Assembly: GCA_946965045.2 (NCBI GenBank)
Contig: OX337233.1
Coordinates: 2,232,001 to 2,296,000, forward strand
Source: Epithemia pelagica
Taxonomy: Eukaryota > Protista > Bacillariophyta
DNA: 64,000 bases
Reading direction: 5' to 3'
Shown in pieces: positions 4,552-50,983 of the stretch. The position numbers were made by a program, and so were the translations under genes. Under the pieces are notes generated by a model. The model saw only the letters and a list, made by a program, of their open reading frames with translations. It did not search any database and was not told the origin of the DNA. Numbering within the stretch: position 1 is the stretch's first letter; the number at the start of each line of letters is the position of its first letter.

Positions 4552-7500
4552 ATGTCTCGGGAGCAATCAATGACAAACAATGGAAGTGCTGGAAATGGTC
4601 CATCTTCAAATTCGACAAGAAGTAGCGGTGGTGACAATGGTGGAAACAGTGTGACGGAACTGCAGGCCGAGGTGGCATCATTAGGGCGAGTGTCCCATCG
4701 GTTGGCCATGATTGACAACGTTCCACAATTTGAGTCCGTTGTCGGCAAGTTGTTACCCAAACTTCTGGTTCGTATGGGCCGCAACCATGAACAGCAGCAA
4801 CAACAACATATACAGCAACCGGAACAGGTGCTACGACAAAGAATCCAAGCAAAGTTAATGGAAATCTTTAGTCACATTCTCAAACGGACTAAGGAATCCA
4901 CAACAACATCTTCCTCTGTAGACAAAAAACAGGAAAACGAAGATCCTGCATCGTTGAGAGAACCATTACCCTGTAAAGCCATTTTGGACTTGTTGGTACA
5001 AACGGACCAACCAGAGCATGGTACTCCTGTTGTTACGAATCGTTTGCAAATTCAACCTGACTTGGATGCCTTGACCAAAAATTTGAGTCTGACCTTTCTC
5101 ACCGTTGGTGTACCCAGGTGTCCTGATCCGGCACCTCTTATTCCTCCCTTGTTGGTCTGTTTGCACCATGAACGAGAGCAACAGTTTCTCAAACTACGGC
5201 AGCAACAGCGACAACAACAATCTGTGGCTTCCAGTACCAACGCATCCACAACCGCGGCAACAGGAACTGCTGCCACGACATTGTCCACATTGATACTTCA
5301 TTGCCTCGTGGCGCTTGGCAAAACAGGGGGTTCCGTGTCCAAGACTTTGGGTGCCAGTTCATCAACACCGACAGCATTTGAAAAACTGGAATCGATTCGA
5401 TACTTTTTACAGCAACATGACAATTGCGCGGCTGTTTTGTACGAACTCATCCTGGATGGCCTATTGTGGACTCCTGCGTCAACTAGCATGAGCAGTCTAC
5501 CACCACCAGGCATTTCTCAGCACGGTCAAGAACGCTTGCAACAGGCAATCGGGGCTACCCCATCTACGCCGCTGTTGGTACCAGACACGAAAGTAGCTCT
5601 CGTGGAGTTGATTGCACCAGCTCGCAAAGCGCTCTTGTTGAGCCATAAAGGAGAATCTCCCTCCACAAGCGATTCCAGTTCCAAAAATCTGGCTCGAACA
5701 TTGACCCTGCTTGCCGTGGCCAAGGGAGTTTCGGCGACCATGGAAAGAGCTCAAACGTACTGGCAAATGTACATGCAAAGTAGCGATCATCACAGTAAAA
5801 AGAACCAAACTCATGGATCGTCCGAAAGCGCTGGCTCATCTACGTCGTCCTTACAGCAACAACAACAGGAAGCCAACAAACGACCTGTTTCAGGAGCTGA
5901 CAAGCCGAGAGGCCCATCATTGACCTCAGCTGTCAATGACGTTGTATTCGAATTACTCTCTCTGTCCTTGGGGCAAGGACAAGCCGAGGATATCGTTCAT
6001 CAGGTGGGAATCGATCCTGACAACAACAATGGCGAAAAAATGACAACTTCATCAGCTGGCGCGAGCTCATGCGCGTTGCCCTTGCATTGTGAGTTTGGTC
6101 ACTCCTACCAGCAACAACAAGAGGAGGATGGTCCCTCTGTCTGGGCGAGCAAACGCCGGGCAGTTGCATTGACACCAACAGCAACGGCAGTATGGACAAG
6201 CCTGGCGTCCAATTTACTTCCTCTAGTCTCTCCAATGATTTCAAGGAAAGCCTCCAACTTTTTCGTTTCGTTTCAAATCTCTCACATGGTACTCTTTTTG
6301 GCGCAAAAGTATTTGACAGCTTCGTCGACACATGGCCTTAGCAGTGCCATGTCTGCCATTCAGGCCAGGCCATTCCTAGCCTTGGTCGAGATGCTTGAGG
6401 CTGTGACACTTCAGCTGACCAAGGTGAAACAAGTCATTCACCAAAGTGAGAAAAAAACGCTTGGCAAGATCGAGGACCTGGAAGCAAAAATTCTGGAAAC
6501 TGTCAGTGAAATGCTGAGGGTTCAAGTTGCGACTACTTCGCCTGGCTCCATATCAACGTCATCGAACAGTAGTATGATTATGAATAGTGAAGGCAGTTGG
6601 GCTGTACGCGAAAAATGCTACTCGATCGTCTGTCATTTATTTCGATCCAGTACCGAGACACAGAGTAGAAAGAACAACGGAGACGATCCTTGCATCAAGA
6701 ATGTAGTGTCCATTGACACTGTCAATCTACTGTTTGCCTGCGCCGCTAGAGAACATGAAAGATTACGGCCACGGGCCGTGGCAGCGTTGGATACACTTCT
6801 GGAGGCATTTACACGAGTCTACAGGACAGAGGAAAAGACAGAATCCGGAGATCCCATTAGCATTGAAATGGAAAATCCGTGGGCTGCCGCGTCCACAACT
6901 CCATTGGTGGTCGAGAACATTGAGGGTATGGTTGATACGGAGCAGAAAGATCGACAGACAGTGGCAAAATCGTTGGTGCCACTGTTGTGGAATGCAGCGC
7001 AATCGCACCAACCAAAATCATCACGTGTAGCTGCCGCCCGTTGGGCTACAGAAATTTTGAAAAAGAATGAATTGGATCTTGTTGCTGGATGCCATCTCTT
7101 GTGCTTCTTGGCTGGTGATTCTGATGTCACGGCCATGGCAGTCGCAAAACAAGGGCTGTTTGATAGTGGCAGCGAGGAAGGGAGTGACAAGTGGCAGGGT
7201 TGGCAAGATAATGCGGAGGACGAGATTGGTGAGGCCGACTTAGGATCCTGGAACTCAATCCAGAACACAAAAGCATCGCCAGGTTCTTTTCCCGAGTTTT
7301 CAACGTTTGTTGAGACAGTGTTTTGTTCCCCACGAGAAGGAAGGGACACTAGATTTCAGAGGTACTCTGAATTTTCGGTGTTGGGCAAAGCTGCTTCTCT
7401 CCGGTATGCCCTTCGATGTCTCCTTATGGACATGTATGGAGGCGATGATGATGCGGTTTCTCAGTATCTGCAAACAATGTTGATCACTCTCGATATGTTC

Positions 7501-10500
7501 GCCAGCGACGCTGTCACGGGACAAAATCGCAGTTCCCTTGAATTGCTGGATCAATGCTGTGTTTGCTTATTAGCAACATTGAAAAACTCGAGCTTTGCTC
7601 GTCGCGAATTCTCACATGGAACTCCGATGGATGGGAAACTCACCTACAGTTTGACTCTTTCGCAAGTGGAAGAAATGGTAACAGCTGTTCGGTCCTCCAA
7701 AGCTCGTAGGTATTTAGCGAGCATCATTGGGGTAATATACGAAGACAGTGAATTTGTGAAAAACGCCACAACGTTCTCCACGTGGATGTCACTGAGTGGC
7801 GCAGAAAGGTCTTTGTCCCTCTGTGTCAACCAAATGGATCAGATTGAAAAGAGCCATGTCCAATTGAGCAAGCTTCACGGTGTGATATACATGAGTGGAC
7901 ACGTTCTGCGAGCAATCAGATACCGTCTTCTCCAGATTTCCAGCCAGGATGTTGATCACACAAGAAGGGACTGCACAAGGCTGTTACAACTACTTGGACA
8001 GGGCGTCGTACACAAGGAAGAGGTTTTGAGTCGTGCTTCCGTTGATGCAATTGGAATTGCACTCTCGTTTGATACTCTGGATGCTCCCCCTTTCGACCAA
8101 ACCCTCAACGACGGTTTATGCGCCGTGCTAATGAGCATCTCTATCGCTATCCGGAAGTTTTGCGACGGTGAATCAGTGGATGCTCATCGGGCCATAGAAC
8201 TTGTTCGTGTTGGTGGAATTGCACTGGGTGCGACGTCAAATGTAACCGATGAAGTCCACGGGGACTTCCACAAGTCTAGACAAGTATGCCTTGAGGCAAT
8301 CTTTTCGTCCATTGGTTCGTCAGCGGTATGCAAAGAGGAAGAAATCGCACTCGTTGCTGGTGAGGCTTTAGGCCGTTACGTAGACTCATGCGTTTTCCAA
8401 TGTAGTGATCTGAGCTGGCCTAATGAATATGAGGAGCAGTTTGCCTTGAAACTCCCACCCCAGGAACGAGTGTTTTATCTCCTCTTAACTCACACTCTCC
8501 AAGCGTCGAGTCCTCATAAAAGAACTGCGACGGCTCCTACTCTGCTGGTGAGTAATTGTTTGATCTGTCTTTCTGGAGTCATGTTTGAGTGTTCCTGAAC
8601 ACTCACAATCTGCATTCGACAGGGTCTTGTTGGACGAGCTGCAAGGCTGGTAAGTGAAGAAACTTCTAAAATATGTTCCCTCCTTGGAATTATCTAACCG
8701 TTCCAATTTCAGGTGCATCTACAAGAACGAAACGGCGGTCGATCCTTCGTCGTGACAGTACGGTCACTTCTACCCAAAATCCAAAGCGCTTTCGTTTCCC
8801 TGTTAGCTGATCCAAAGATCAAGCACTTTTCACGAGAAAGCTGCTGCCTAGGTCTTGCCGCGAGCCGAGGTCTAGCGGTATTCAACGCACACATGGATGG
8901 AGCCCCGAACAGGGACAATTCCGTGGACAGCATGAACGAACGACTTCTCCGTGCTTTTGGTCAGACTGCAAACTACGGTGGGAGTGCATATCAAGAGACC
9001 AACCAACAGGCCGCAGAACGTCGAGCTGAACAGAGGGCATCCCAAAGTGCAAATAATATTTTGGAGCCCTTTGGGATGGAGAGCGAAGTTGGAGGAGCCG
9101 CCGGAATGGGCGAAGCTGCCCTAGGTGCTTATCGTGAAATGGCCGCGGCAAGTTTGGCGTTGGGCAGACCAGATATTCTCTACGCACTGCTAATTTTGTC
9201 CATATCACACAGTTCATGGTTTGTTGGAAGCAACAGAGAGAAATATAGTGCTGCATCTCTTCTGGGTGAAAACAGCATCATTGGAAGCCGCACAAACACA
9301 ATTGAACTAAGAAAGGCACTACGACCTCATCTCGGAAAGCTCCTTCCAAGGATTCTTCGCGCATGCAACGACCCAAATAAGCAAACAAGGGAGCAGATGA
9401 GCGTTTTGTGGTTAGGCTTGACAGGAGGCGGCGCAGAGGCAAGGGATGCCATATCCTCTCATTTTGTAAGCACAGTTGATGTTCTTATAAAAGATGCGTC
9501 CAACAAATTGTGGAGGGCACGGGCAGGTGCATGTGGCGCGCTTGGTGAAGTGATTGTTGGTCGGGATTGGAGCACATTTGGTGGCGGTCCACCAATTCTA
9601 TCCGACGATGACATACATGATGACCGTCTGACAAAGTACGCTGGAGTCAGACTTCTTCGACTCTGGAGGGTGGTTGTCCGAGCAATTGATGATGTCCGTG
9701 ATGCCGTAAGGAGTAACGGGGAGCGTCTTGGACGCTCTCTTCGAAGCTTGACTATACGACTTTGCGACCCGAGTATTTTGGATAAGACAGATGGGGCTCT
9801 TACTGTTACTGAGGAACAAAAGGTGACTTGGGCTCGTGATGCTAGTGCTGCATGTGCTACATCAATTCGGTGGCTTGTCAAACATGGTCTCAACCAGAAA
9901 GTTTCGGAAACTCAAGGCCTTTGTATTTCTACTTTGGTCGAACTCATTGCAATCGCGAAACCGGCTATTGTCGAGCCAAGTTTACCGGAACTTCTTCGGT
10001 CCTTGCTCATGTCGATGTCGAGTCTAGAACCTGCTGCCCTTAACTACCTTCAGCTTCGCACTGACAACCAAGAGGGTCTTGAAAGGGCACGCTTGCAACT
10101 TGCCCAAACAGGACCGCTAGCGAAAGCCGTCACAAAGTGTGTAGATCTTCTTCCACATGCCAAGCTATCCATTCAACATGAAGTCGTGTCTGAACTTGAG
10201 ACAACCCTTCGCCTTTCTGTTGGGTTTGCAACTCGTGCAGCGGTTGCTGACACGGCTTCAATGATGTGCACAAGCTGTCCAGGAGCTTTTTCGTTTCGGG
10301 GCTCAGGTAGTGCCGTTCCAAGTGTACGACTAATGCGAGCATTCTATTTCGCCGCTGAAAGGGAGCGAGGCCAAGGTGCCAAAGATAAAATGGTTCATGC
10401 TCTGGGAAGTCTTGCTGCTCTCTGCCCTGGAGCGAGCGTTCGTTCACTAGCCGTCAGGGCATGCAAACGATACAAATCAAGTACTGGAAACAATGATGAT

Positions 10501-33645: not shown

Positions 33646-33677
33646 TGTGTTGACTTTTGCGCCCACAAATCCCCTGA

Positions 33678-33736
33678 ACGTCGAAACGCGACTGAACTCG
33701 CTCACTGCAGTCCCTCCATCGTCGGTTGTCAGTCGC
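33678..33736. repeat. Left copy of 59-bp direct repeat (probable target-site duplication)
   Basis: ACGTCGAAACGCGACTGAACTCGCTCACTGCAGTCCCTCCATCGTCGGTTGTCAGTCGC matches 50925-50983 at 58/59 positions. Confidence 0.95.
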
Positions 33737-33873
33737 ATTCATTTATGTTTTACGCTACCTTTGTCACTCGTCGTCCTACCCCTCCCCCACCTACTCCCCA
33801 CTCTACATAAGCCCGAAAAATTACTCTACTTGGATTTTTATTTTAGTGTATAAAAATTAGAATAGCCCAAACG

Positions 33874-33995: not shown

Positions 33996-35313
33996 CCCTC
34001 GGTATCAGTGTCCACTGCTTAGCTGTTTTTTGTCTGTGCCACCTTCACAGGTTCCCAAGTGGACACAGACAGCATTTTTCGCTTTTGATGCATATAGAAA
34101 TTATCAAATTGCAAATTGGCACGCATGCCCAGCTGAACTTTTCGACGTTTGAAACGGACGCAAGCCCAGCAAGCGTCCCCTGCGTGGATGACGGTTGGTT
34201 GTTGCATAATTCGGGGCAAGCTCACAATTCTCTTTTCTTTTGCCAAAGCACATCGTACTTACTGCTTACGAATGTTACTGGCTTTCCAGGTGAGCTTGAT
34301 ACATTGCCAATTGCCATGTTGTCAATGACATCACTCATGCTCACTACCAATTGCCACTTTTGTTTGCTCTGCTCGTGGGAGACGCTACTCATCTGTTTAG
34401 TCGCTGGGCAGCTCATTACTCTCATTGTTCATTCTTGTCGAACAGAAATGACTGGTTTTTGCTGAGCGCCATAACTTTGATTGCATTAAAAAAACTCTAT
34501 ACTCTAGACATTCTTTTGTTTATTTACTACCTAGTAGTAGAACGCCAGTGCTTGTCATCCATGAGACTTTTGAGCCTTGTGAATTCGTTGCAGCTTTGTT
34601 CTTTGTTGTGAGCACGACGATGACCCTCAGTTTTGCTATGAAAACACAACAGAACAGCTCTCACAAGCTTGTACCGCTCACTTTGAGCACTCTGTGTCGA
34701 CTACCTAGGTAGGATATGATAATTGGTCAGTAGGGTGTGGCAAGATGGCTTCCCATCTATTTGATGCAAAAACAACATCGTTGAGAAATGATTGAGAATG
34801 ACGCTATGATGAGAGACGAGAGAGAATAATCTATCCTATAGAGCATATGACAGTAGCCAAAAAACAATCAAACAACAAACAATTACGGCAAGGAAAAGAT
34901 ATTCCAGTTGACATCTGGCGGCTTGTCATCTACTCGTACGAAATGAGACAAAAGTAAAGGATCATGCAAGAACAATAGGAAAGACAGCTGCAGCAGTCAT
35001 GCGTGAGAAAAAGGGAAAAGAGACAACAAGATAAGTACTCACCCACGTCATGGTCAAGCATTTGGCTCGGTCTTGGGTTTTTGTGACAGGTGTCGAGATG
35101 ATGATGGATGCCCAAATTTGAATCGTGGTGACCCGGCGAGGACAACCACCAACCGTCAGCTGTCACTTGCACGCTGGCCTTGCTTCAACCCTGAGGAATT
35201 TTAATGGTTAGACAGACAGACGAAAAACGAAAAATGCTGTCTGTGTCCACTTGGGAACCTGTGAAGGTGGCACAGACAAAAAGCAGCTAAGCAGTGGACA
35301 CTGATACCGAGGG
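33996..35313. mobile_element. 1.3 kb segment bounded by 86-bp inverted repeats (possible non-autonomous DNA transposon)
   Basis: 33996-34081 is the reverse complement of 35228-35313 with 1 mismatch. Ends are CCC...GGG with AA on both outer sides. No recognisable ORF inside. Confidence 0.55.
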
Positions 35314-35683: not shown

Positions 35684-38028
35684 TCAGTAGTGGTAGCCAC
35701 GGCCATATCCATGGCTGCCGCCATGGTGACGCAAACCACGGTGATGGTGATGGTGATGATGATGTGGAGGAGGTGGTGGAGTATATCCACCACCACGGTA
35801 GATATCACGGTAGTACGGCGGTGGTGGTGGTGATGGTGTGTATGGGCGGTGATGGTATCCGCGGGAAGATTGGTGGTGATGAGGATGATGATGATATGGT
35901 GGCGACTCAGATGGTGGAGGTGGGGAGTACCAGTTGTTGCGATGATAAGCAACACGATGGTGCTCCTCCACACGACAATCAACCCCGCGGTCTCAACTAC
36001 TGGTGTGGTGATACCCTCCGTGATGGGGCGTGGACGATGTCGAAGGTGGTGGTGGTTGCATGGACGTCGTGCTTGGGGGAGGAGCATGTTGCTCCGATGT
36101 TGATGGAGGTGGTGCTGGTGGCTGCACGACTCCGAGGGTTTGATGATGGTTGGAGGACTTGTAGTGGTTGTTGTTGTTTTCCATCGGAACCAGGGCCGTT
36201 GACGATGTCGTTGTTGGTGGTGGTTTCGTGGTCCCCCCCGTGCATGGAGGTGGGGCATGTTGTTCCAATGTTGATGCAGGTGGTGCTGGAGGTTGAAAGA
36301 CTGCAATGGTTGTTGTGGGTGGTGGTTGCACGGCCGTAATGGTGGTTGGATCTACCACCTGTTGTTCCACTGTTGACGACAGCGACGGTGGAATCGTCGT
36401 TGTCATGGTTGGTGGAGGTGGTGGTGGCACAGTCGCAATGCTTGGAGGCGGCGCATGTTGCTCCACAGTTGATGGACGTGGTGGTGGTGGCGGTGGCTGC
36501 GCTATGGCCACTGTCGTTGTTGCTGTTGTTGTTGCTGGTGGTGGAGGCCCAACTCCAGGTGGTGGTGGTTGTGTCACCACAGCATGGTCGCTAGGTGGTG
36601 GTGATGGCTTCGTAGAGGCAACTGAAACCAACAAGTGTGATGGAGAAATGACGAAAACAGTGAGAAACCACAATATAACAATCAACCAGAAGCCAACAAT
36701 CTACGTACCAACGATGGTGGAAGGCGGTGAAGTTTTCTTTTTCTTACGACAGTGAGAAAGAACTTCAAGAACCACATCCGATGACGACGACGACGACGAA
36801 GACGAGTAATCGATGGACTTCTTATTCGTCTTCTTCTTCTTCTTCTTCTTCTTCTTGCGTTTTTTCTTGGATTTCGTGTCTGTGACAAGAAGAGAAGACG
36901 GAATGAGATCGATGCAACCAAGAAAACAACAAAGCAACAATCAACTTACCATGGGTTTGCGACTTGGACGACTTGGATGGATTGTCGTCCAAGAGACGGA
37001 GGATTCGCGCCAATGAATCCTCGGCTTCGATGGACGAATCGTCGTCCTGTCTCTTGGCAGCCTTGAGCTGCTGCAACGCCTTGCGACGGCGAATCTTCTT
37101 CTTGGCCTTTTTCATAAAGGCATCAATGTCGGTGGAGGATGACGACAAGGACGAGGGGGATGAAGCGGTTTTTGACTCTTTCTTCTTGGATCCCTGTTCA
37201 TCTAAACATAATAGTAGAGTAGTTAGTAACAAAGTAGAAAGAGGGATTCATGCAATGAGTGTACGTACCATTCTTCGTGTTTTCTTTGTCGGCCTCGTCA
37301 ATCTTTTCGGGAGGACGGTACCAGTTGGCCGTGACGGTCCGAACTTGATTTTCAGCCGTGACGTCCTGGTACAGTACGTTGACTTCCGTCGACTTGTGAC
37401 GGGCAAAGGAATTCGACGCTTTCTGTGGCACTCCACAGTTGGCAACATTCGAGATGCCCGTGCGTCGACCAGTCCGAAACGTCACTTTTTCCGCGTTGTC
37501 GAACTTGCATTGGATGGCAAGTTGACGGGCGTTCCTATTCGGCCAGTTTACACCCAATCTACCCGCACACTTGAAGCCCGACCCATTGGCGTCGGTCTCT
37601 GAAGTTTCGCGGACCAACTCCGTCCAACCGAGGTGCTTCGCACCATCCTTGCGGTTCTTCAGGTGTTTCGCGGGTACCTGTTCTAGAAAAAACAAACCTT
37701 GCCACCCCGGCGGGTGGCCCACCTTCATGAGGTGCATCAAAATCTTGTACGTCGAGAATTTGTCGTCAGGATTCTTGATCACCATGTGCGTTGAGTCTTG
37801 CGTGTCGTTGACAGTTCTGTCGAAAGCCAGATTGTTCGTCGCGAGAGTCGAAGATTTTTCCAACACAGACTCACGCAAAATAATCGCAGGAAGACCAGCC
37901 AACAACCCAAACGATTTGTCTAGAGAATCTTTGAAAATCAGGTCAGATACTTTAAGTAATCTTATCTGGAGACAACAGCATGCAACAACCAAACTGTTAG
38001 ACAACAGCAACAACAACAATAACAATCG

Positions 38029-38083
<55 letters not shown>

Positions 38084-39309
38084 CTTACCTCAGGGCCTCG
38101 AAGGCCAAAATCTCGTGACGATTTGTGCACTCCCATGCTTAAGGCAAGAGAGTACTGACCTTCTTCGAACGGTCGAAGCTCTGGCTCACACGTCCGCATT
38201 TTTTCTTCATCGTCGAATGCCGTGGGTGCACGTTGGGGGAGGCGGCCGAATTTGGGACGGACGAGAGCGGCTCGGTTCCAGATGTCGGACAGGTAGCCAT
38301 GGTACGAGCCGAAACCATTGCGAAGATCACTCTGGGCGATGACGATGCCGTGAGTCTTGATCAAGGCAAAGATGTGATTTAGCATCTTCATGGTGGTGTT
38401 GGGTTGGAAGAACCACTTCGGATCTTCTACGTCGTCGGTCTCGGGGTTGAACCCACGCATTCGGTGGTTCACCAAGAAGACCATGATTGCACTATTCAAC
38501 AATGTCAACTTGGGGGGTGTCTTTGCACCACGCAAAGCAAGGAAGAGAAGAGGAGTGGGAATGTCAGCTCCACTCAGTTCATCAACATCTTGAACAATCT
38601 CCAGCAGGAAGTGCATCTCGTGATGCTTCTGAATGTACCCGAGAAACTTGTTCACCGACGCCGCCTTCTCCTTGTCGTATGACGCCTTGCATCCGGTGAG
38701 GTCACGGATGGTGAAGGTGTTATTGCCGTAGATGGTCGGCGACAGCCGGCAGTACTGCGCCCAGGCCGACAAAGATCGTGCTCGCGAGGAATCCATGGTG
38801 GGCGGGTTGAACGACACCTCGCCAATCTTCATGCTGTTCGACTCAGCATCCCAAGCCAGATGCTTCTTCTTCACTAGAGCTTGGGATACTAGCTTGGTAT
38901 CCACCAAGTTAGACTCAACTATCGTTGGAGCGTTGAGGAGAGCATCCGTCGCGTTCGGAAGAACTTCCGCCATGTTTTGTTGACGACGAGACGAGAGTGC
39001 GGGCACAGCCACATTGCTAAAGACACAATGAGGTTAGAAACGAGACAGAAAACAATAGTAAACAACACATTCTCAGACATAGGTTACTTACTTTGATTGC
39101 TCGGGTGCTTCTTGTCCTTGTTGACGAAGAGGAAGACGACGACGATTTTGGGAAGGAAGGTTCACATTCGACAAGGGTGGACGACTCTGGCGGCTATCGG
39201 GTGGACGGACTGGATTGCGGTATGGATTGACATTGTTGTTGGTGGGAATGTCGTTGTTTCTGTTGGCAGCCGCCCGCTCTATTTGGCGGCGAGATTGTCG
39301 AGTCGCCAT
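35684..39309 (-). CDS. Crypton/DUF3504-like tyrosine recombinase with long low-complexity C-terminal tail, 6 exons
   Basis: Exons 39309-39092, 39016-38089, 37965-37269, 37201-36950, 36879-36709 and 36621-35684 all join in phase through GT-AG introns (1068 codons). Motifs DDEEKMR...DFGLRGPEIRLLKVSDL, TFRTGRRTGIS, ARHKSTEVNVLY. One in-frame TGA at 35995-35993 in the tail. Confidence 0.85.
38030..38083. repeat. (CAA)18 microsatellite inside intron 2 of the tyrosine recombinase gene
   Basis: Pure CAA run, flanked by degenerate CAA units, within the 123-bp intron 37966-38088. Confidence 0.95.
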
Positions 39310-40012
39310 GGTCGGGCTGCGAAACGACAATAAAAAACGATGCACAATGAAAAATGAGAGTGAGGAAAGTGAAGACGGTGACACTTGCGACAATGTGCGG
39401 ATACGTAGGCTGCACGTAGGAATCAGTAGGAAACAAAACAGCGACTCGACCATGCGCGCGCGCACGGCAGGTGGATTGAAATTTTGGGAAGACGTCTGGA
39501 ACGAAAACACACGACAATGGTGGGAAACGCGGCGAAAACTTACCGTCTCTGTAGGATTTCCATGATCCAAGGGTCGGAACTACAGGTGCTGAAGTCGTCG
39601 GATGACCCAGTACAGTCGTGGTAGAGTTCCGAGCGGCGAAAGAGATTGCCATCCCATTCGTCTGTTGCATTGTCCTTGGTGACAAAGACGAGAGTTTCGC
39701 CCGAAGAGTCTGATGAGCAACTAGACGACGAAGACGAACTACAAAGATCTATTACATCAGGAGGGGTGCAAAGGTCTGTTTGGAAGCATGAGCAGCTCCT
39801 CCAGAAGGAGGAGGAGTCACCATGGTCGGTCGTCTTCCTTTTCGCATGATGTTGTTGTGTTGTTGTTGCACAAAATGTGTCGTCTGTACGAGAGAATCGT
39901 GGGATTGTCAGTTGGGGGGTGGGGGATGTAAGTAATAAATAGAAATTACTTATGTATTCCTGTGTCACGCCTATGTAAACAACACGATTTGTCCTAATTA
40001 CCTATTTGACTT

Positions 40013-40098
40013 ACGCGAGCCATCGGATTTGTTGCGCAAGCACGACAGTATGATGCAATTTGAGCAACGCGAGCAATCGGATGAGGTGCGCAAGCACG
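40013..40098. repeat. Pair of 32-bp direct repeats upstream of the recombinase gene
   Basis: ACGCGAGCCATCGGATTTGTTGCGCAAGCACG (40013-40044) vs ACGCGAGCAATCGGATGAGGTGCGCAAGCACG (40067-40098), 28/32 identical. Confidence 0.8.
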
Positions 40099-40255
40099 CA
40101 AGCAAGATACCTAACTAACAGTGTGCCGGCGCGAATGTAGAAAGCTAAATAGGCCAACGATTACTAAGTATCGATTGAGAGAAACGATCACTTAGGAAGA
40201 CCAAAAATTACCTAGGGTGCGCGGGCAGGACTCCTCGTGACAAAGGAAGCTAACA

Positions 40256-40467
40256 TACTTTAATAGCCCCGGGGGACTCCTCGTCGCAGGGCGCTCCTCG
40301 TGGCTTAACTCCTCGTCGGGCAATAGCTTCTCGTCGTGGACTGCCCCCTCGATCCGCTTACGCGGATCTCACAGGGGCAGTCCACTCCTCGTCGCTATTG
40401 CCCTTCTCGGAGTTAAGCCACTCCTCACACCCTAGCTTCTCCTCGTCCCAACCTGGCTATTAAAGTA
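40256..40467 (-). other. 212-nt rod-like hairpin (structured ncRNA or ssDNA element) with GNRA tetraloop and repeated tandem G.A internal loops
   Basis: Perfect stems 40256-68/40455-67 (13 bp), 40300-12/40409-21 (13), 40318-27/40394-403 (10), 40336-47/40374-85 (12) and 40351-57/40362-68 (7). Loop 40358-61 reads GUAA on the minus strand. Intervening loops are CTCCTCGTC-like on both arms. Confidence 0.85.
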
Positions 40468-40799
40468 GATTTACTACAGTTAGATCTCTAAGCCATTGTA
40501 ACGCGACGTCTCTAAGCTAGAGTAATGCGAAAGCCAATGTCTGGAAGAGAGCATACAGACTTGTTTTCAACTTTCCAGACCCCGAAGCGAAATCGACAAT
40601 ATAACGACGACAACATCAGAAAGCAACAATAGCACTCAACAAGATCGTGTTATAGGATTGAAATTTGCTTTCTGCACTTGCTATCCAAGCAGCTCTTTGT
40701 TATAGTAGGCCGCCAATCTTTCGCATACTGGAAGCTGCATTTTCTGCAGAAATTTCACCAAGATGACTGTTGGAGAACCACAGTAGGTACTTTTCCAGA

Positions 40800-43440
40800 C
40801 TACCCACCATTGATTCTATTCTCAAGAAGCTTCATCTGTGCATCTACATCAATGCTAGTCCCCTCTGTGCCTGGCTCTAAAGATCTCAGATCAAAAAGAG
40901 CAATTTCACCGTTTCGAATCCCTACATGTCGCCACCACAAGTCATTGTCATTGTACTTGAGCTTCTTGGATTTGAAATGTTCCAAGACATGGCGAATGTG
41001 AGGCAAACTCTTGCGCCTTGACTCAACATCAGTCAGAGGAGCAAAGTAAGGAAGGAGCAAACACCAAAGACCATGTAGCTGCCTTACATCCACGTCGTAC
41101 TTCCCTCCGTATAAAGATTTCCAATACTCCATTTCTACAAGGGCCTCTTTCTCGCGAGCTTCCAAATCGCTTTTGCGCCATTGTTGGCGTTCAAATGCAT
41201 ATTCGCGGGGTCCACCATGCGCTAGGCTATCCTTGATAATATAGAACTTGGCAACGCACGCTTCTCCAGTGGAATTGCAAATCAAATACGCCCTTCCATT
41301 GCTGCCTCTACCCAAGTCATTCAGCAAGTAGTAACTCTTGGTTGTTTTGTCCGGGGTGGTAAAGTAGTCCACTTTGATGTTTGAAGGTAAATCACCCCAT
41401 ATCATGCCGTTTTCATTTACACGAGCACGGGCAAAATTTGGCGTAGAACCTTGGAGGGGGATATGGCAAGGAGGCGACCTCATGCACGATTGTATCGCAC
41501 ATCGGACGGCAAACATCAATGCTATGAAAACTCTTTCCTGTGCTACAACTTTTGAGTAGTATAAGCAACGATTCCAATCACCGTCGTCATCGCTACTGGC
41601 GCCCTTCTTGGCGTCATCATCGATGCCGCAATCACAATCGCTGCTGGAAGATATGCCGACGTCGCTCTTCTGCGCCGTGGAAACAACAAGATTTGGTTTC
41701 CTTAAAGAGCTGCCAGGCGATGGCTCAGAATCATCTGTTTCTCCTTTCTTCAAAAACTTCTTTTCTTCGTCTAACCGATTTTCCATCACTTCCGCTACTT
41801 CCTGCATCAACGCTCGAGATTTTCCGGCATCGTCGAGGTGTGCGATCACCATTTCTTCGTAGGTTGTCAAGATCACAAACGGATAAGCGACACCCATTCC
41901 GAGCAAACCGACCAGGTAATCGTAGACTTGCCCCGCGACACTGTGTGATGTGAACACATCTGTTCCAGGTTTTTTTACTTTCACCACCAAAACGATTCCC
42001 ATAGTAGATTGAGACACAACGATGACGTCGGGACGGTAAGAGAACACCGAGATTTCCGGTCAAACCTTGAGGTACTTGTTGAGCCCCATTGCAAGCAAGA
42101 CATCTTGTAACAAACGCACCACATACATCTGAATTTCTGATTCGTTTTGATACACGAAAGCATTATCCTCGTATTCGCGGGGTCCACCATGCGCTAGGCT
42201 ATCCTTGATTAAGAACTTGGCAACGCACGCTTCTCCAGTGGAATTGCAAATCAAATACGCCCTTCCATTGCTGCCTCTACCCAAGTCATTCAGCAAGTAG
42301 TAACTCTTGGTTGTTTTGTCCGGGGTGGTAAAGTAGTCCACTTTGATGTTTGAAGGTAAATCACCCCATATCATGCCGTTTTCATTTACACGAGCACGGG
42401 CAAAATTTGGCGTAGAACCTTGGAGGGGGATATGGCGAGGAGGCGACCTTATGCACGATTGTATCGCACATCGGACAGCAAACATCAATGCTGTGAAAAC
42501 TCTTTCCCGTGCTACAACTTTTGAGTAGTATAAGCAACGATTCCAATCACCGTCGTCATCGCTACTGGCGCCCTTCTTGGCGTCATCATCGATGCCGCAA
42601 TCACAATTGCTGCTGGAAGATATGCCGACGTCGCTCTTCTGCGCCGTGGAAACAACAAGATTTGGTTTCCTTAAAGAGCTGCCAGGCGATGGCTCAGAAT
42701 CATCTCTTTTTCCTTTCTTCAAAAACTTCTTTTCTTCGTCTAACCGATTTTCCATCACTTCCGCTACTTCCTGCATCAACGCTCGAGATTTTCCGGCATC
42801 GTCGAGGTGTGCGATTACCATTTCTTCGTAGGTTGTCAAGATCACAAACGGATAAGCGACACCCATTCCGAGCAAACCGACCAGGTAATCGTAGACTTGC
42901 CCCGCGACACTGTGTGATGTGAACACATCTGTTCCAGGTTTTTTTACTTTCACCACCAAAACGATTCCCATAGTAGATTGCACAACGATGACGTCGGGAC
43001 GGTAAGAGAACACCGAGATTTCCGGTCGAACCATGAGGTAATCTTCGATCCCCATTGCAAGCAAGACATCCTCCAACACATGCATCGCATATCTCCGAAT
43101 TTCTGATTCGTTTTGATACACGAAACCATCGTTCTTCTTTAGTTGTAATAGCACAGATGAGGGACTATCGTCACTATATTCGGTCAAGATATTTTTGTCA
43201 TGCAAGAGCGGGAATGTCAACACATGCATTGGCGGGGCTACCATCAATGTTGTCTACCTCTCCCAAAATAGTCGCATCTTCGTGCCCCGTGTCTTCGGTA
43301 TGGGTACTACTTTGCAGGTCTTCGTTCGATCGATCGAGTGGTGGAATCACTGCGCCTCTTTCTTCCAAGAAGCTTTCAAGCGACATTTTGATTTTGATCC
43401 GTTGTTCCAGCTTCACACGCTTGAAGCCATGTTTTTTCAT
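40800..43440 (-). pseudogene. Crinkler-type REase-fold plus protein-kinase-like gene, internally duplicated and disrupted
   Basis: YQNESEI...RPDVIVV...VKVKKP (PD-(D/E)xK-like, with K in the Glu position), GQVYDYL, LGRGSNGRAY, VAKF, NDLWWRHVG...LFDL. Frameshift near 43200; TGA at 42062-42060. Confidence 0.7.
41200..43125. repeat. Tandem duplication, period about 970 bp, inside the REase-kinase gene
   Basis: 41200-42159 vs 42172-43125, offsets 972/969/966 owing to two 3-bp indels. Nearly identical except for a diverged segment of about 100 bp (42060-42171 vs 43026-43137). Confidence 0.95.
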
Positions 43441-43909
43441 AGTGACAAGCACTCAGAATGAACATTGGAGATTGGAGTTTGTTTCGCGCTCGGCATCATG
43501 ATATATTAGGGTACGAAAAAACTTCACTCATCCCACGGTGATGATGAAAAAAAAAAAGGGAGATCTATTATAACGCTGCCGCACGCACCCCGCAGCCAGA
43601 GGGGGGTGTTAGTTTCAAAAGGCAGCAATATGATTGGGTTAGAAATGTCGTTTCACAAAAAATCACTTAGGAAACAAATGTCGTTACAAGTGTCTTACCG
43701 TGTCCCGGGAACCCATCGAATCACGGACAAAAAACATGGAGGGAAGATTCCATCAGCCGATCCGGTCGGTCCTTCACGGTCGCCCATGGCATGGCCAAGT
43801 CGACCATTGCGACAAGTCCTCTTCTGACCATCTCATGACCCTTTTGAGCATGGTCAGAAGCCTGGAAAAGAGGATACACTTCAATAAGTTAGAATAACAA
43901 ATAGAGATC

Positions 43910-46900
43910 ATGAGTTCTGCAGCACAATTCACAGCAGCCAAGGCCATGAGGCCACAGTTGCAACGATACAGAAATCAGTACTCTCGTTGGCCAAAGACGA
44001 GTTCGAAGAAGCGTTCAGGTTGGAGAAAGATGGACCTTTTGGTCATCTTTGAGTCCGACATCGACTGCCCCATCTGCATGGCCAAGGCAAGAGGAATGGC
44101 CATCCCTCATCGCCTTCACCACCCCAGATGCAGCAAAAACACAACAACAAGGGGCAAGGGAATGAACGATGGAAGAGGAGCAGAGGTAGTGGCCTCAGAA
44201 AAGGCCCAGGCTGCCCATGCCAAAGCAATCCGCAAGCAACTTACCAGTGCAGAGAGATTGTCTGCCTCCAATGTCACACAGGAGGCACTCAACACTTTCA
44301 TGGAACATCGTCCCAATTGCTCGTCAAAAAAAGCAACAACAAGAGACGCTGAAAATGAAAAAAACACAATCAACTACGGAGACTATGGCAACGGAAAGTT
44401 CAACCGTTGGTGGCGAGGAAGGCGTGTATGTTTCAACAGCCGAAGATTTCAAGTTTGAGGTAATTACGCGTGTGACAGCAGTACCTACGGAGGTGCATGT
44501 CCCACGTGCTGTGCATGCGTTGGCGAGTTATGTGACCGACACGTGCCTTGGTTCTAAGCGTTGTGTTGAGAATTTGAAACCTTTCTTCACTAATATGACC
44601 GTTACTGTACCCCCCATTGCCGACAACACGAGTGCTTTGTACGACTCGATTGTGGGACAGGAACTCCTGGTTGTTGATTGGGAGCTGTTTTTCCCCAGTA
44701 ACCACTTGCGTTGTCCTTGTTGCCGGGGTAATCTCCAGCGTACGCGATCGAACTTTTCAAAAAACAAGTCCCTTTTCCCCATTTTCGCCATGTCTGGTCC
44801 CCCAAAGTATGCAATACTTATGGGATACAAGTGTGCCGGGTGCTCGGCTGCCTTCTATGCAAATGATGGAGAATTGCTCGCACGACTGCCTCCCTACATG
44901 GCTATGTGTTACCCAGTGGAACCCAAGTATGCTAGAGGAACATCGCATCTAGCTAAAGATGCTACGAGGATAATGGAAGCATCAATGGTAACCTATGGCA
45001 ATGGGGATTACATCAGTCGGATGCTATATGAAGGAATCAACACCTGCTATGAAGACAAGACTATGAGGTACTATTCTTATTGTGCTGCTACAGGAAAAGA
45101 ATCAGAAGACTACATGCAAAGGATGGTGAGTTTCTGGTTCGCTACCCACCTTTAGGCGAGACAATCCGCCAGCTATATGACGATGGAGCAAGCTCCGAAT
45201 GGCAACCCTGGATGGTGTCTGACAATGAGAGAAACACAAGAGAGATTCAAGGGGTTAGATGCCAGCACATGTTTGCTCACAACCACACCCACCAGGTAGT
45301 GAAAAATTATCCAAGACGCCTCAATGCAGCTGCAATGTGGACCATGGCAACAGAGGCAGGAGAAATTGCTTGTGCAGTGTTAGTGAACGACACATCAGCA
45401 CTCGAGTTTGCACATGCTGCGGAACAAGTGCTGAGACGTACCGGGTTTTGCCCCAAGGCCATGTACTCTGACACATGGCCTTGTGGCAAGGATTTTTGGT
45501 TGTTGTTGGTTGATGACTTGGAGGGCCGTCTTGGCCTTTTCCATTTCATACAGAGGATAACCAAGACGCTCAGACAACGGCACATTGACTTTGGGATAGC
45601 CATGAAGGATTTGTTGGATGCGATCTACGAGTACCATCCTGAAGACTTGGAGAAACTTGTTGGTTGTTTGAAAAATGGAACCATGTCAAGCTCCAAGAAA
45701 CAATTCACAGACGAAGAGATCAGTGAAATGATGGGAACCAAGACCTTTCGACAGAGGTACTCAAAGAACTTACGGAAGATTATTCGGGGTGGTGATACGA
45801 TTGTCCTCAAGTTGGAGGAGTGGAAGTGCAAATACAAGTGCACTTCCACTCCTGGCAAGCCACCAGCACGAGGCCGATTGGATCCACACTCCAATCAACC
45901 TCTTTTTACGGCCGAAACACATCAAGCACTGGAAAACTGTAAAGAGAAGGCAAAGTTCCTTGCTGATCCCTTGCCCGTGGAGAAAATGTATCGTGAGATA
46001 CCTCCATCACCAAGATCAAGCAACCAGCTAGTGCAGTACGTACCTTTGAGAGGAGAGAGTAAGCTCGAGAGCTTTCATGATAATTTGACGCATTTTGCCA
46101 ACTGTGGCATACGAGAAACTCTCGCAGATGCTTTGAATTTGGCAGGCACGGCCCAGTATAACAGGGCAATTCGTTCACAAAATGAGAATCATGACGAAGT
46201 CTCAAGAAGAACGTTCAGTGGTGCCTGCAGGATGGGAAATGGTGGTGAGTTTTGGTAACGCATGCAAAACAAACATGATCAATATACTTGCCTCGATGTC
46301 TGGAGCTTCTCGTCCTCCCTTTCCAGAGGTTGAGAAGCTTCCAGAAGATGCGGGAGAACGGTTTTTCTCCGAGTACCTGGAAACGAGAAAAGAAATCACG
46401 CAACAAGTTCCAAAGCATCCACTCAACGATCGATGCCAGTGCCGAAAATGTGCGAGCAACAAGAAGAGGTTGCTGCATGACACGTCCATTCCATTGTTGG
46501 GTTTGGCAGAGGAGGAGTCAGAGGTCGAAGATGAAATCCAACAACAGGACAGCGAGGAGAATCCAGCCAAAATACAACAACCACAGACACAGCCAGAAAC
46601 ACAACAACAGACACGGCAAGAAACACAACAACAGACACAACAACAAGAAACAGCACAAGCACAGGCAATCAGTAGCAATAAGAGAAAGGAAAGAGAGGGA
46701 GAAGAAAAAGAGAGCGACGATTTGGATGAGAACAACACCAGCAACAAAAAGCAAAAGGTTACAAACAACAGCGAAGCCTTACCAACAACAACAATGGCAG
46801 CAACAAATCAATCAGCAGCGACAGTGCAGGATCAACAACAACAACACAAAGAGCCTCAAAATGCAGCGAACAGCACACCTGCAATGGCAACAACAGCAAA

Positions 46901-50910: not shown

Positions 50911-50924
50911 AAGATGAAGCTTGG

Positions 50925-50983
50925 ACGTCGAAACGCGACTGAACTCGCTCACTGCAGTCCCTCCATCGTCGGCTGTCAGTCGC
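50925..50983. repeat. Right copy of 59-bp direct repeat (probable target-site duplication)
   Basis: Matches 33678-33736 except T33726/C50973. Lies about 15 nt from the 5' truncation point of the RT. Confidence 0.95.

Follow-up and report, generated by a model that had tools for sequence, protein, structure and literature searches.

The 212-nt rod-like hairpin described here, found in a 64,000-nucleotide stretch of the genome of the diatom Epithemia pelagica (the window, in what follows), is the left end-piece of a 6.7-kb Crypton-like tyrosine-recombinase (YR) element. It is a real, selected and strand-biased feature: it folds strongly and better on one strand than on the other, it occupies a terminal position, the other end of the element completes it, and it is conserved at the level of structure across divergent elements. 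On balance, we lean towards reading it as the left-terminal part of the transposon's folded recombination site, in the manner of the attC sites of integrons. A terminal rod of this kind is not described for the Crypton class in the literature searched, where queries combining Cryptons with hairpins, or tyrosine recombinases with sheared G.A pairs, returned nothing relevant. The features of the element, and the related loci, are collected in Table 1.

Table 1. Features of the element in the window and loci carrying related recombinases. YR identity refers to the C-terminal domain of the window recombinase.
Feature or locus	Position or source	Strand	YR identity	Description
Rod hairpin, 212 nt	40256-40467	-		five main stems; between them, symmetric loops of the GACGAGGAG/GACGAGAAG type; C-G and tandem G.A pairing
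First bases of element (left end, GTAAATC...)	40468-40474	-		L001 similarity begins here; read depth falls just outside
Post-hairpin stretch	40198-40250	-		prolongs the 3' arm; holds motif copy 40231-40239; pairs with right end
Two tandem 51-nt units	40004-40108			78% identical; between hairpin and recombinase gene
Main ORF, Crypton-like tyrosine recombinase	37198-39012	-		604 aa; RxxRR...RH...Y; triplet microsatellite in frame
Nested 1.3-kb element	33996-35313			91-bp terminal inverted repeats; lies within the 3' portion of the YR element; does not belong to the system
Right end of element (...GACGACGAGTGACAAAGGTAGC)	33754-33805	-		outer part of the rod's 5' arm once the ends are joined or brought together
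L001	ENA assembly ERZ21939226		85%	rod, inner part inverted
L002	ERZ21939226		47%	rod
L003, L004	ERZ21939226		46%	rod
L007	ERZ21939226		40%	shorter rod, about 150 nt
L008	ERZ21939226		42%	shorter rod, about 150 nt
L009	ERZ21939226		35%	no hairpin
L010	JGI metagenome		40%	rod
L011, L012	two ENA metagenomes		29%	rod

The hairpin and its strand-biased pairing

The outer stem of the hairpin is an inverted repeat (40256-40268 with 40455-40467) complementary at 13 of 13 positions, and the arms 40300-40347 and 40374-40421 are 79% complementary. The loop sequence CTCCTCGTC is present inside the hairpin in four exact copies, or in six when identity of at least 90% is accepted; five exact copies occur in the whole window against 0.41 expected, a number equalled in 0 of 100 shuffles. 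The stems and loop repeats that the original prediction had described are therefore borne out, and the additional motif copy that it had placed at 40231 is real too, being part of an extension of the rod.

When folded as RNA, the hairpin reaches -115.2 kcal/mol on the plus strand (z -12.5) and -139.8 kcal/mol on the minus strand (z -15.7); the corresponding values for DNA are -60.9 kcal/mol (z -10.8) and -66.6 kcal/mol (z -12.4). In all four cases the observed energy was matched by none of the shuffles. The rod forms from either strand, with the greater stability on the minus strand.

What distinguishes the two strands? Read on the minus strand, the CTCCTCGTC loops become GACGAGGAG and oppose one another as C-G pairs and tandem G.A pairs, i.e., as C-G / G.A / A.G / G-C ladders in which the G.A steps are split by a single C-G. 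In an alignment of the arms, scored with a scheme that treats both strands alike, the mismatches of the window hairpin in its minus-strand reading are 19 G.A, five G.T and no A.C, nearly all positions of the rod are paired, and gaps are few and mostly close to the apex. The same strand-neutral count over six distinct hairpins gives 404 Watson-Crick pairs, 108 G.A against five C.T (p = 3e-26), and 16 G.T against five A.C (p = 0.027). Both the tandem G.A loops and the strand bias had been proposed from the window copy, and both hold in these counts; the bias comes from G.A and G.T pairs rather than from extrahelical bases or an unpaired spacer.

The sequence 5'-CGAG-3' pairs with itself in RNA and in DNA, and has the pyrimidine-GA-purine context that is known to favour stable tandem G.A pairs. 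The core of every module of the rod is precisely CGAG opposite CGAG. The known cases of tandem sheared G.A pairs are isolated, whereas here the modules hold up to three tandem G.A steps each and the motif copies recur along the rod every 15-18 nt.

Two details emphasized earlier did not survive comparison with relatives. The apex had been highlighted as a GNRA tetraloop, and in the six distinct hairpins it reads GTAA, GTCA, GTCA, GCAT, TCTTTT and GAA, while contigs of other copies from the same genome carry TAAC or TGAC at the plus-strand apex. The k-turn-like feature of the window copy, a 3-nt bulge followed by G.A/A.G beside the apex, is found only in the window and L001 type and is absent from L002 and L003. 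The GNRA loop and the k-turn are non-conserved features.

Variation within the rod is also visible in contigs from three runs of the same organism. Some copies step back by 100 nt within the hairpin region (window 40323/40224), and others have lost 58 nt at the apex, from one motif copy to the next (window 40329/40388); slippage or recombination among the repeated motifs may have given rise to them.

No open reading frame of at least 60 aa crosses the hairpin. A permissive Rfam scan of 36000-46000 found no relevant family, apart from one chance match to CrcZ elsewhere in the interval, in keeping with the earlier impression that the structure does not belong to a familiar family.

The element, its recombinase and its two ends

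The left end of the element lies at 40474 (GTAAATCTAC), so that the hairpin starts 7 nt inside it, and the right end at 33754 (...GACAAAGGTAGC). Similarity between the window element and L001 runs from window 40477 down to about 33754. The loci L003 and L004 have 4,522 bp in common, at 98.7% identity and with unrelated flanks, and this common sequence begins 8-12 nt before the hairpin. In the mapped elements, which measure 4.1-6.7 kb, the sequence common to the copies continues past the hairpin into the gene. Word depth in the contigs of the three same-organism runs, which is not to be equated with copy number, is 5,400-10,000 over 40125-40518 and 116-220 immediately to the right (40519-40715), a sharp boundary; across the recombinase ORF and the spacer that separates it from the hairpin, it is roughly 165-2,600. 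Far more sequence carries the hairpin than carries the body of the gene. Neither the terminal position of the hairpin on a transposon nor its repetition in this genome had been recognized in the original prediction.

No terminal inverted repeats or long direct repeats of the YR element were found. Short direct repeats are candidates at the ends of several copies, namely GTAG/GTAG in the window, GTCG/GTAG in L001, and GTCTA/GTCTA or TAGT/TAGT in L007 and L008; none were found at the ends of L003 and L004, and the flanking repeats are inconsistent among copies. A canonical duplex core site, with inverted arms and a 6-8-bp spacer, can be drawn at the joint of the window element and not in L003 or L007, and was rejected. 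Head-to-tail or circle-junction copies were absent among the fetched loci. A free-standing RNA gene was likewise rejected, given the place of the hairpin just within the left end of the YR element.

The surroundings of the element contain repeats of their own. The nested element listed in Table 1 is absent in L001, and its terminal repeats are 98% complementary and begin with CCCTCGGTATCAGTG; it is a very abundant repeat, because the word depth of its right arm is about 47,000-93,000, versus 100-220 for single-copy sequence. Two 22-nt units, 82% identical, lie just beyond the left end (window 40485-40530). A 62-nt direct repeat, 97% identical, occupies window 33675-33736 and 50922-50983, 17.2 kb apart; its left copy is 17 nt beyond the right end of the YR element and does not belong to it. 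Just outside the left end there are two tandem DUF5898 ORFs of 415 and 395 aa, partly duplicated (window 40800-43247, minus strand), which form a 969-nt tandem duplication at 98% identity. These genes, as well as the ORFs to the right of 40475, are outside the YR element.

As the original prediction had claimed, the hairpin lies on the strand of the recombinase gene, about 950 nt upstream of its proposed ATG. An initial model of this gene was longer (35684-39309) than the main ORF of Table 1. The microsatellite in the ORF, of the (CAA/CAG)n type (window 37955-38086), encodes poly-Cys/poly-Leu on the coding strand, and is possibly an intron or the product of a recent expansion. Several searches with this protein were silent: neither half matched any Pfam family up to E = 10, a profile search of PDB sequences gave only noise, and a word-indexed protein search with the 604-aa ORF had no matches, probably through its low-complexity words. 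Other approaches were more informative. An exhaustive HMMER search with the C-terminal 251 aa recovered 84 relatives, and a language-model search with the C-terminal half pointed to DUF3504/Phage_integrase clusters at 0.95-0.96. In an alignment of 19 homologues the pattern RxxRR...RH(7-9)Y is nearly invariant, and PF00589 matches three of the 19, weakly (best E = 0.0023). From a structural model of modest quality (pLDDT 62), the best fold match was XerA, with a probability of 0.94 but E = 0.27; the Tn1549 integrase, XerH, the HP1 integrase, Cre, and the Crypton-derived QRICH1 are among the other matches. We assign the ORF to the Crypton-like tyrosine recombinases with moderate confidence. The genes called in the L003/L004 and L007 elements have no Pfam family recorded, be it that of a reverse transcriptase or of another transposase, and a DIRS-type element was rejected because neither reverse transcriptase nor RNase H is recorded among the genes of the elements. 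The window sequence itself is eukaryotic, the homologues of the neighbouring protein coming from Entomoneis and Cylindrotheca.

A further property of the element emerges when its two ends are considered together. The last 70-130 nt of each element were joined in silico to its first 300-330 nt, and in all five elements with mapped ends (the window, L001, L003, L007 and L008) the rod extends across the joint. The right end adds 23-53 pairs with the stretch just after the hairpin, these being, in the window, pairs between 33754-33805 and 40198-40250. As a control, the duplex formed by the last 60 nt with the 90 nt after the hairpin was compared with that formed by every other 60-nt window of the same element: the last 60 nt were the best partner in five of five elements (z -4.1 to -6.8), and none of the 250-417 windows per element was as good. 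Since the last 50-60 nt pair with the post-hairpin stretch, the joint of the ends falls inside a rod of about 300 nt. It lies in a short AT-rich gap without GA modules between two helices of the 5' arm, opposite a 3' arm that is unbroken.

This end-to-end helix covaries, even though its partners sit 4-6.7 kb apart in the elements. AGGAC/GTCCT in the window becomes ACGAC/GTCGT in L001, and ATAGCTTGATC/GATCAAGCTAT in L007 becomes CATAGTCTGATA/TATCAGACTATG in L008. Where ACA in the window is replaced by GTG in L001, the helix is kept via G.T wobbles, which exist on the recombinase strand only.

Relatives of the rod

The DNA around ten YR homologues was fetched, most of the genomic relatives coming from the single assembly ERZ21939226; at two further loci, L005 and L006, the sequence is too short to reach a hairpin. 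With the exception of L009, the YR-linked relatives all have, ahead of the YR gene and on its coding strand, a rod 145-245 nt long that folds strongly, although their YR proteins, drawn from ERZ21939226 and from unrelated metagenomes, are only 24-85% identical. In seven distinct lineages, the unrelated metagenomes included, the rod keeps the same place and orientation with respect to the YR gene. At L011 and L012 the rod is only about 110 nt ahead of a 935-aa ORF.

What is kept in these rods is the module rather than the stem. The loops of the relatives are GACGAGGAG, GACGAGAAG or close variants, and the modules are periodic (GACGAGGAG/GACGAGRAG). The outer stem, in turn, differs between the window (CTACTTTAATAGCC), L002 (CTAAGGAGAC) and L003 (ACATTTGCTGC), and L007, L008, L010 and L011 have no stem in common with the window. 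The closest subfamily can be aligned, and 12 of its 61 pairs have changed on both sides in a compensatory manner. Between L007 and L008, identity is 93% in the hairpin and 75-81% outside it. The prediction had named covarying stems with conserved loops, as well as linkage to YR genes, as checks; the former is what the compensatory pairs and the common loop motif reveal, and the latter is found in every lineage with a readable flank.

The motif was also used to scan metagenomes. This yielded 53 loci, mostly GC-rich chance matches or coding matches, among which five have the architecture of a rod (L026, L027, L038, L048 and L060). The only one of these with enough downstream sequence, L026, has homology to the N-terminal region of the recombinase 1.2 kb downstream on the same strand. 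No match was obtained when metagenomes were scanned with the conserved core GGGCAATAGNNNCGAGGAGTGGACTGCCCC. A second cluster of motifs in L003 (11802-11909) was rejected as a simple GACGAG/GTCGTC repeat and not a rod.

Two loci depart from the general picture. At L009 (3000-8000) the YR homologue sits beside ordinary host genes, and there is no rod within 5 kb upstream; this may be a decayed or domesticated copy. In L001 (5487-5608, corresponding to window 40300-40421) the inner 86 nt of the hairpin are exactly inverted relative to the outer part. Because the inversion starts at the GGGCAATAGC stem and continues inwards, the loops there read as pyrimidines, and both strands of this copy fold equally (-174.2 vs -175.1). 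The inversion reflects either a flip like that of viral terminal hairpins or a recombination between the arms.

How the rod may be used

The original prediction had left three functions side by side: a structured RNA or leader, a scaffold for protein binding, and a folded substrate for the recombinase. The last one is favoured by the terminal position and by the completion of the rod by the other end, and the mechanism that can be envisaged is as follows. The DNA strand with the sense of the recombinase carries a split rod of about 300 nt, to which the left end supplies the 3' arm in full, together with the apex and the inner 5' arm, and the last 50-60 nt of the element the outer 5' arm. Would this rod form in the excised circle? 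Or, would the right end fold back on the left end in an integrated copy? Either is conceivable, and in both cases the 3' arm would act as a continuous splint that aligns the two termini. The joint would be placed at the weakly paired non-GA gap between two helices, where the recombinase would cut and rejoin. Because the modules close as C-G and tandem G.A pairs on the recombinase-sense strand only, the fold is strand-specific. Each module reads the same, 5' to 3', on both arms, with a two-fold symmetry like that of a palindromic operator built with non-Watson-Crick pairs, and would therefore offer a two-fold-symmetric candidate site to a dimeric protein, probably the recombinase. That the sequence of the motif is kept beyond its ability to pair, across proteins as divergent as those described above, argues for probable recognition by a protein. 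We infer that the recombinase binds and cuts the rod, and that the active form would be single-stranded or extruded DNA.

Some observations weigh against a recombination site. The purine strand is also the mRNA-sense strand, and because of this coincidence sequence alone does not separate DNA from RNA. The L001 copy persists despite its inverted inner segment, and L009 has a YR homologue without a hairpin. In addition, we know of no source of single-stranded DNA in Cryptons. The broader proposal, i.e., that diatom Crypton-type transposons move through a folded single strand, with the recombinase recognizing a two-end purine-zipper rod and cutting at the gap of the 5' arm, is put forward as a tentative and rather doubtful one.

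Systems with comparable features are known in bacteria. The attC site of integrons is folded bottom-strand DNA recombined by the tyrosine recombinase IntI; it is a strand-specific imperfect hairpin conserved in structure, and its crossover point lies in the base of the fold, split when the site is integrated and whole on circularisation. The rod is similar in being a strand-specific imperfect hairpin, in being conserved in structure with free stem sequence, and in having the joint of the mobile unit inside the fold, so that the site is split when integrated. It differs in other respects: attC is bacterial, 57-141 nt long, and relies on extrahelical bases and an unpaired spacer, whereas the rod is eukaryotic, reaches about 300 nt, has a conserved 9-nt purine motif and no extrahelical bases, and its symmetric loops are fully pairable as G.A; moreover, its recombinase is not a relative of IntI. 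The forked hairpin attP(+) of CTX-phi offers a second parallel, for XerCD uses a folded single strand whose mismatches make a functional site on one strand only. There, as would be the case here if the recombinase uses the rod, a tyrosine recombinase meets a fold built by mismatches on one strand; the single strand of CTX-phi is, however, the phage genome, while the elements described here are not known to have a single-stranded stage. Among eukaryotic elements, DIRS retrotransposons have an internal complementary region that matches both termini and can hold them side by side, a splint role that the 3' arm of the rod takes here; DIRS encode a reverse transcriptase and use cDNA, and no such gene is recorded in the elements studied.

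The comparison with Cryptons themselves is closer. These lack inverted or long direct terminal repeats and are bounded by short direct repeats of 4-7 bp (PMC3212892), and the CryptonS group occurs in oomycetes and diatoms (Kojima and Jurka 2011, PMC3212892). The elements described here are likewise eukaryotic, from a diatom host, without terminal inverted or long terminal repeats, and agree with Cryptons as 4-5-kb elements that encode only a tyrosine recombinase, a putative one in the present case. CryptonS-1_PTri of Phaeodactylum tricornutum measures 4,671 bp and has the terminal repeat CTGTAAG (supplement, Kojima and Jurka 2011, PMC3212892). Because its size is similar to that of the elements here, and its terminal repeat resembles the TGTN-GTAA of their left boundaries, the family may already be catalogued, without its fold. 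The difference lies in the ends: Cryptons are described without structural features other than short repeats, and the words "hairpin", "palindrome" and "stem-loop" are absent from the text of PMC3212892, while here there is a conserved terminal rod of 150-245 nt, completed by the other end.

Is the rod perhaps a structure of RNA? In a full-length sense transcript it would stand at the 5' end, and pairing with the right end would give a 5'-3' panhandle; such a fold could control the expression, stability or localisation of the recombinase, or bind proteins at its GA modules. The favoured strand is recombinase-sense in all lineages, the RNA fold of that strand in the window is strong (-139.8 kcal/mol, z -15.7), the rods of L011 and L012 closely precede their ORF, and G.U wobbles belong, like the tandem G.A pairs of CGAG/CGAG, to the classic motifs of RNA. 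Yet the fold is interrupted where the DNA element has its ends, and the transcript would need to span a DNA transposon from its first base to its last, although no reverse transcriptase is recorded in it. A diatom contig of a YR homologue, probably a transcript, has a 5' UTR of 53 nt and no rod; the Rfam scan gave no relevant match, and the GNRA loop and k-turn are not conserved. We regard this explanation as unlikely.

Slightly more unlikely still, in our judgement, is that the rod acts as double-stranded DNA, with about 10 direct copies of a 9-bp binding site for a protein, of the accessory or arm type, at the end of the element; its palindromic spacers would then serve cruciform extrusion in a supercoiled circle, or be a by-product. 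Accessory sites are used by many tyrosine recombinases, the motif is conserved in sequence beyond its pairing potential among proteins 24-85% identical, its spacing is regular at 15-18 nt, and the plus strand folds well too (z -12.5). Direct-repeat sites, however, account neither for spacers that compensatory changes keep complementary nor for the pairing with the far end of the element, and the excess of G.T over A.C (16 to 5), along with the purine bias of 108 to 5, points to folding of one strand.

That the hairpin is a fold-back repeat, a MITE or a source of small RNAs, lying by chance beside the recombinase gene and having no role in the element, is very improbable: its depth is roughly tenfold that of the recombinase body (at a likeness of at least 80%), but it holds a constant place and orientation beside the YR gene in seven lineages, unrelated metagenomes included, it lies inside the shared sequence of a coding element of 4.1-6.7 kb that continues into the gene, its region pairs with the element's own right end, and no separate terminal repeats or target duplications surround it, so that a MITE or fold-back element was rejected.

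The folded recombination site is thus the explanation that we retain, and its interest goes beyond a single diatom. Of all classes of eukaryotic DNA transposons, Cryptons are understood least; their ends have been described as featureless and their mechanism by analogy only. A conserved, strand-specific fold made from both ends is a concrete candidate for the recombination site of these elements, and the rod with its GACGAGGAG modules is a structural signature with which such elements can be found and delimited in genomes. Several human genes derive from Crypton recombinases (PMC3212892), and the rod may shed light on what their ancestors recognized. If the single-strand reading is true, tyrosine recombinases would act on folded DNA in eukaryotes as well as in bacteria, the rod would give eukaryotes their first counterpart to the recombination of integron attC or CTX-phi, and the self-pairing GACGAGGAG module would be a new non-Watson-Crick DNA motif recognized by a protein.
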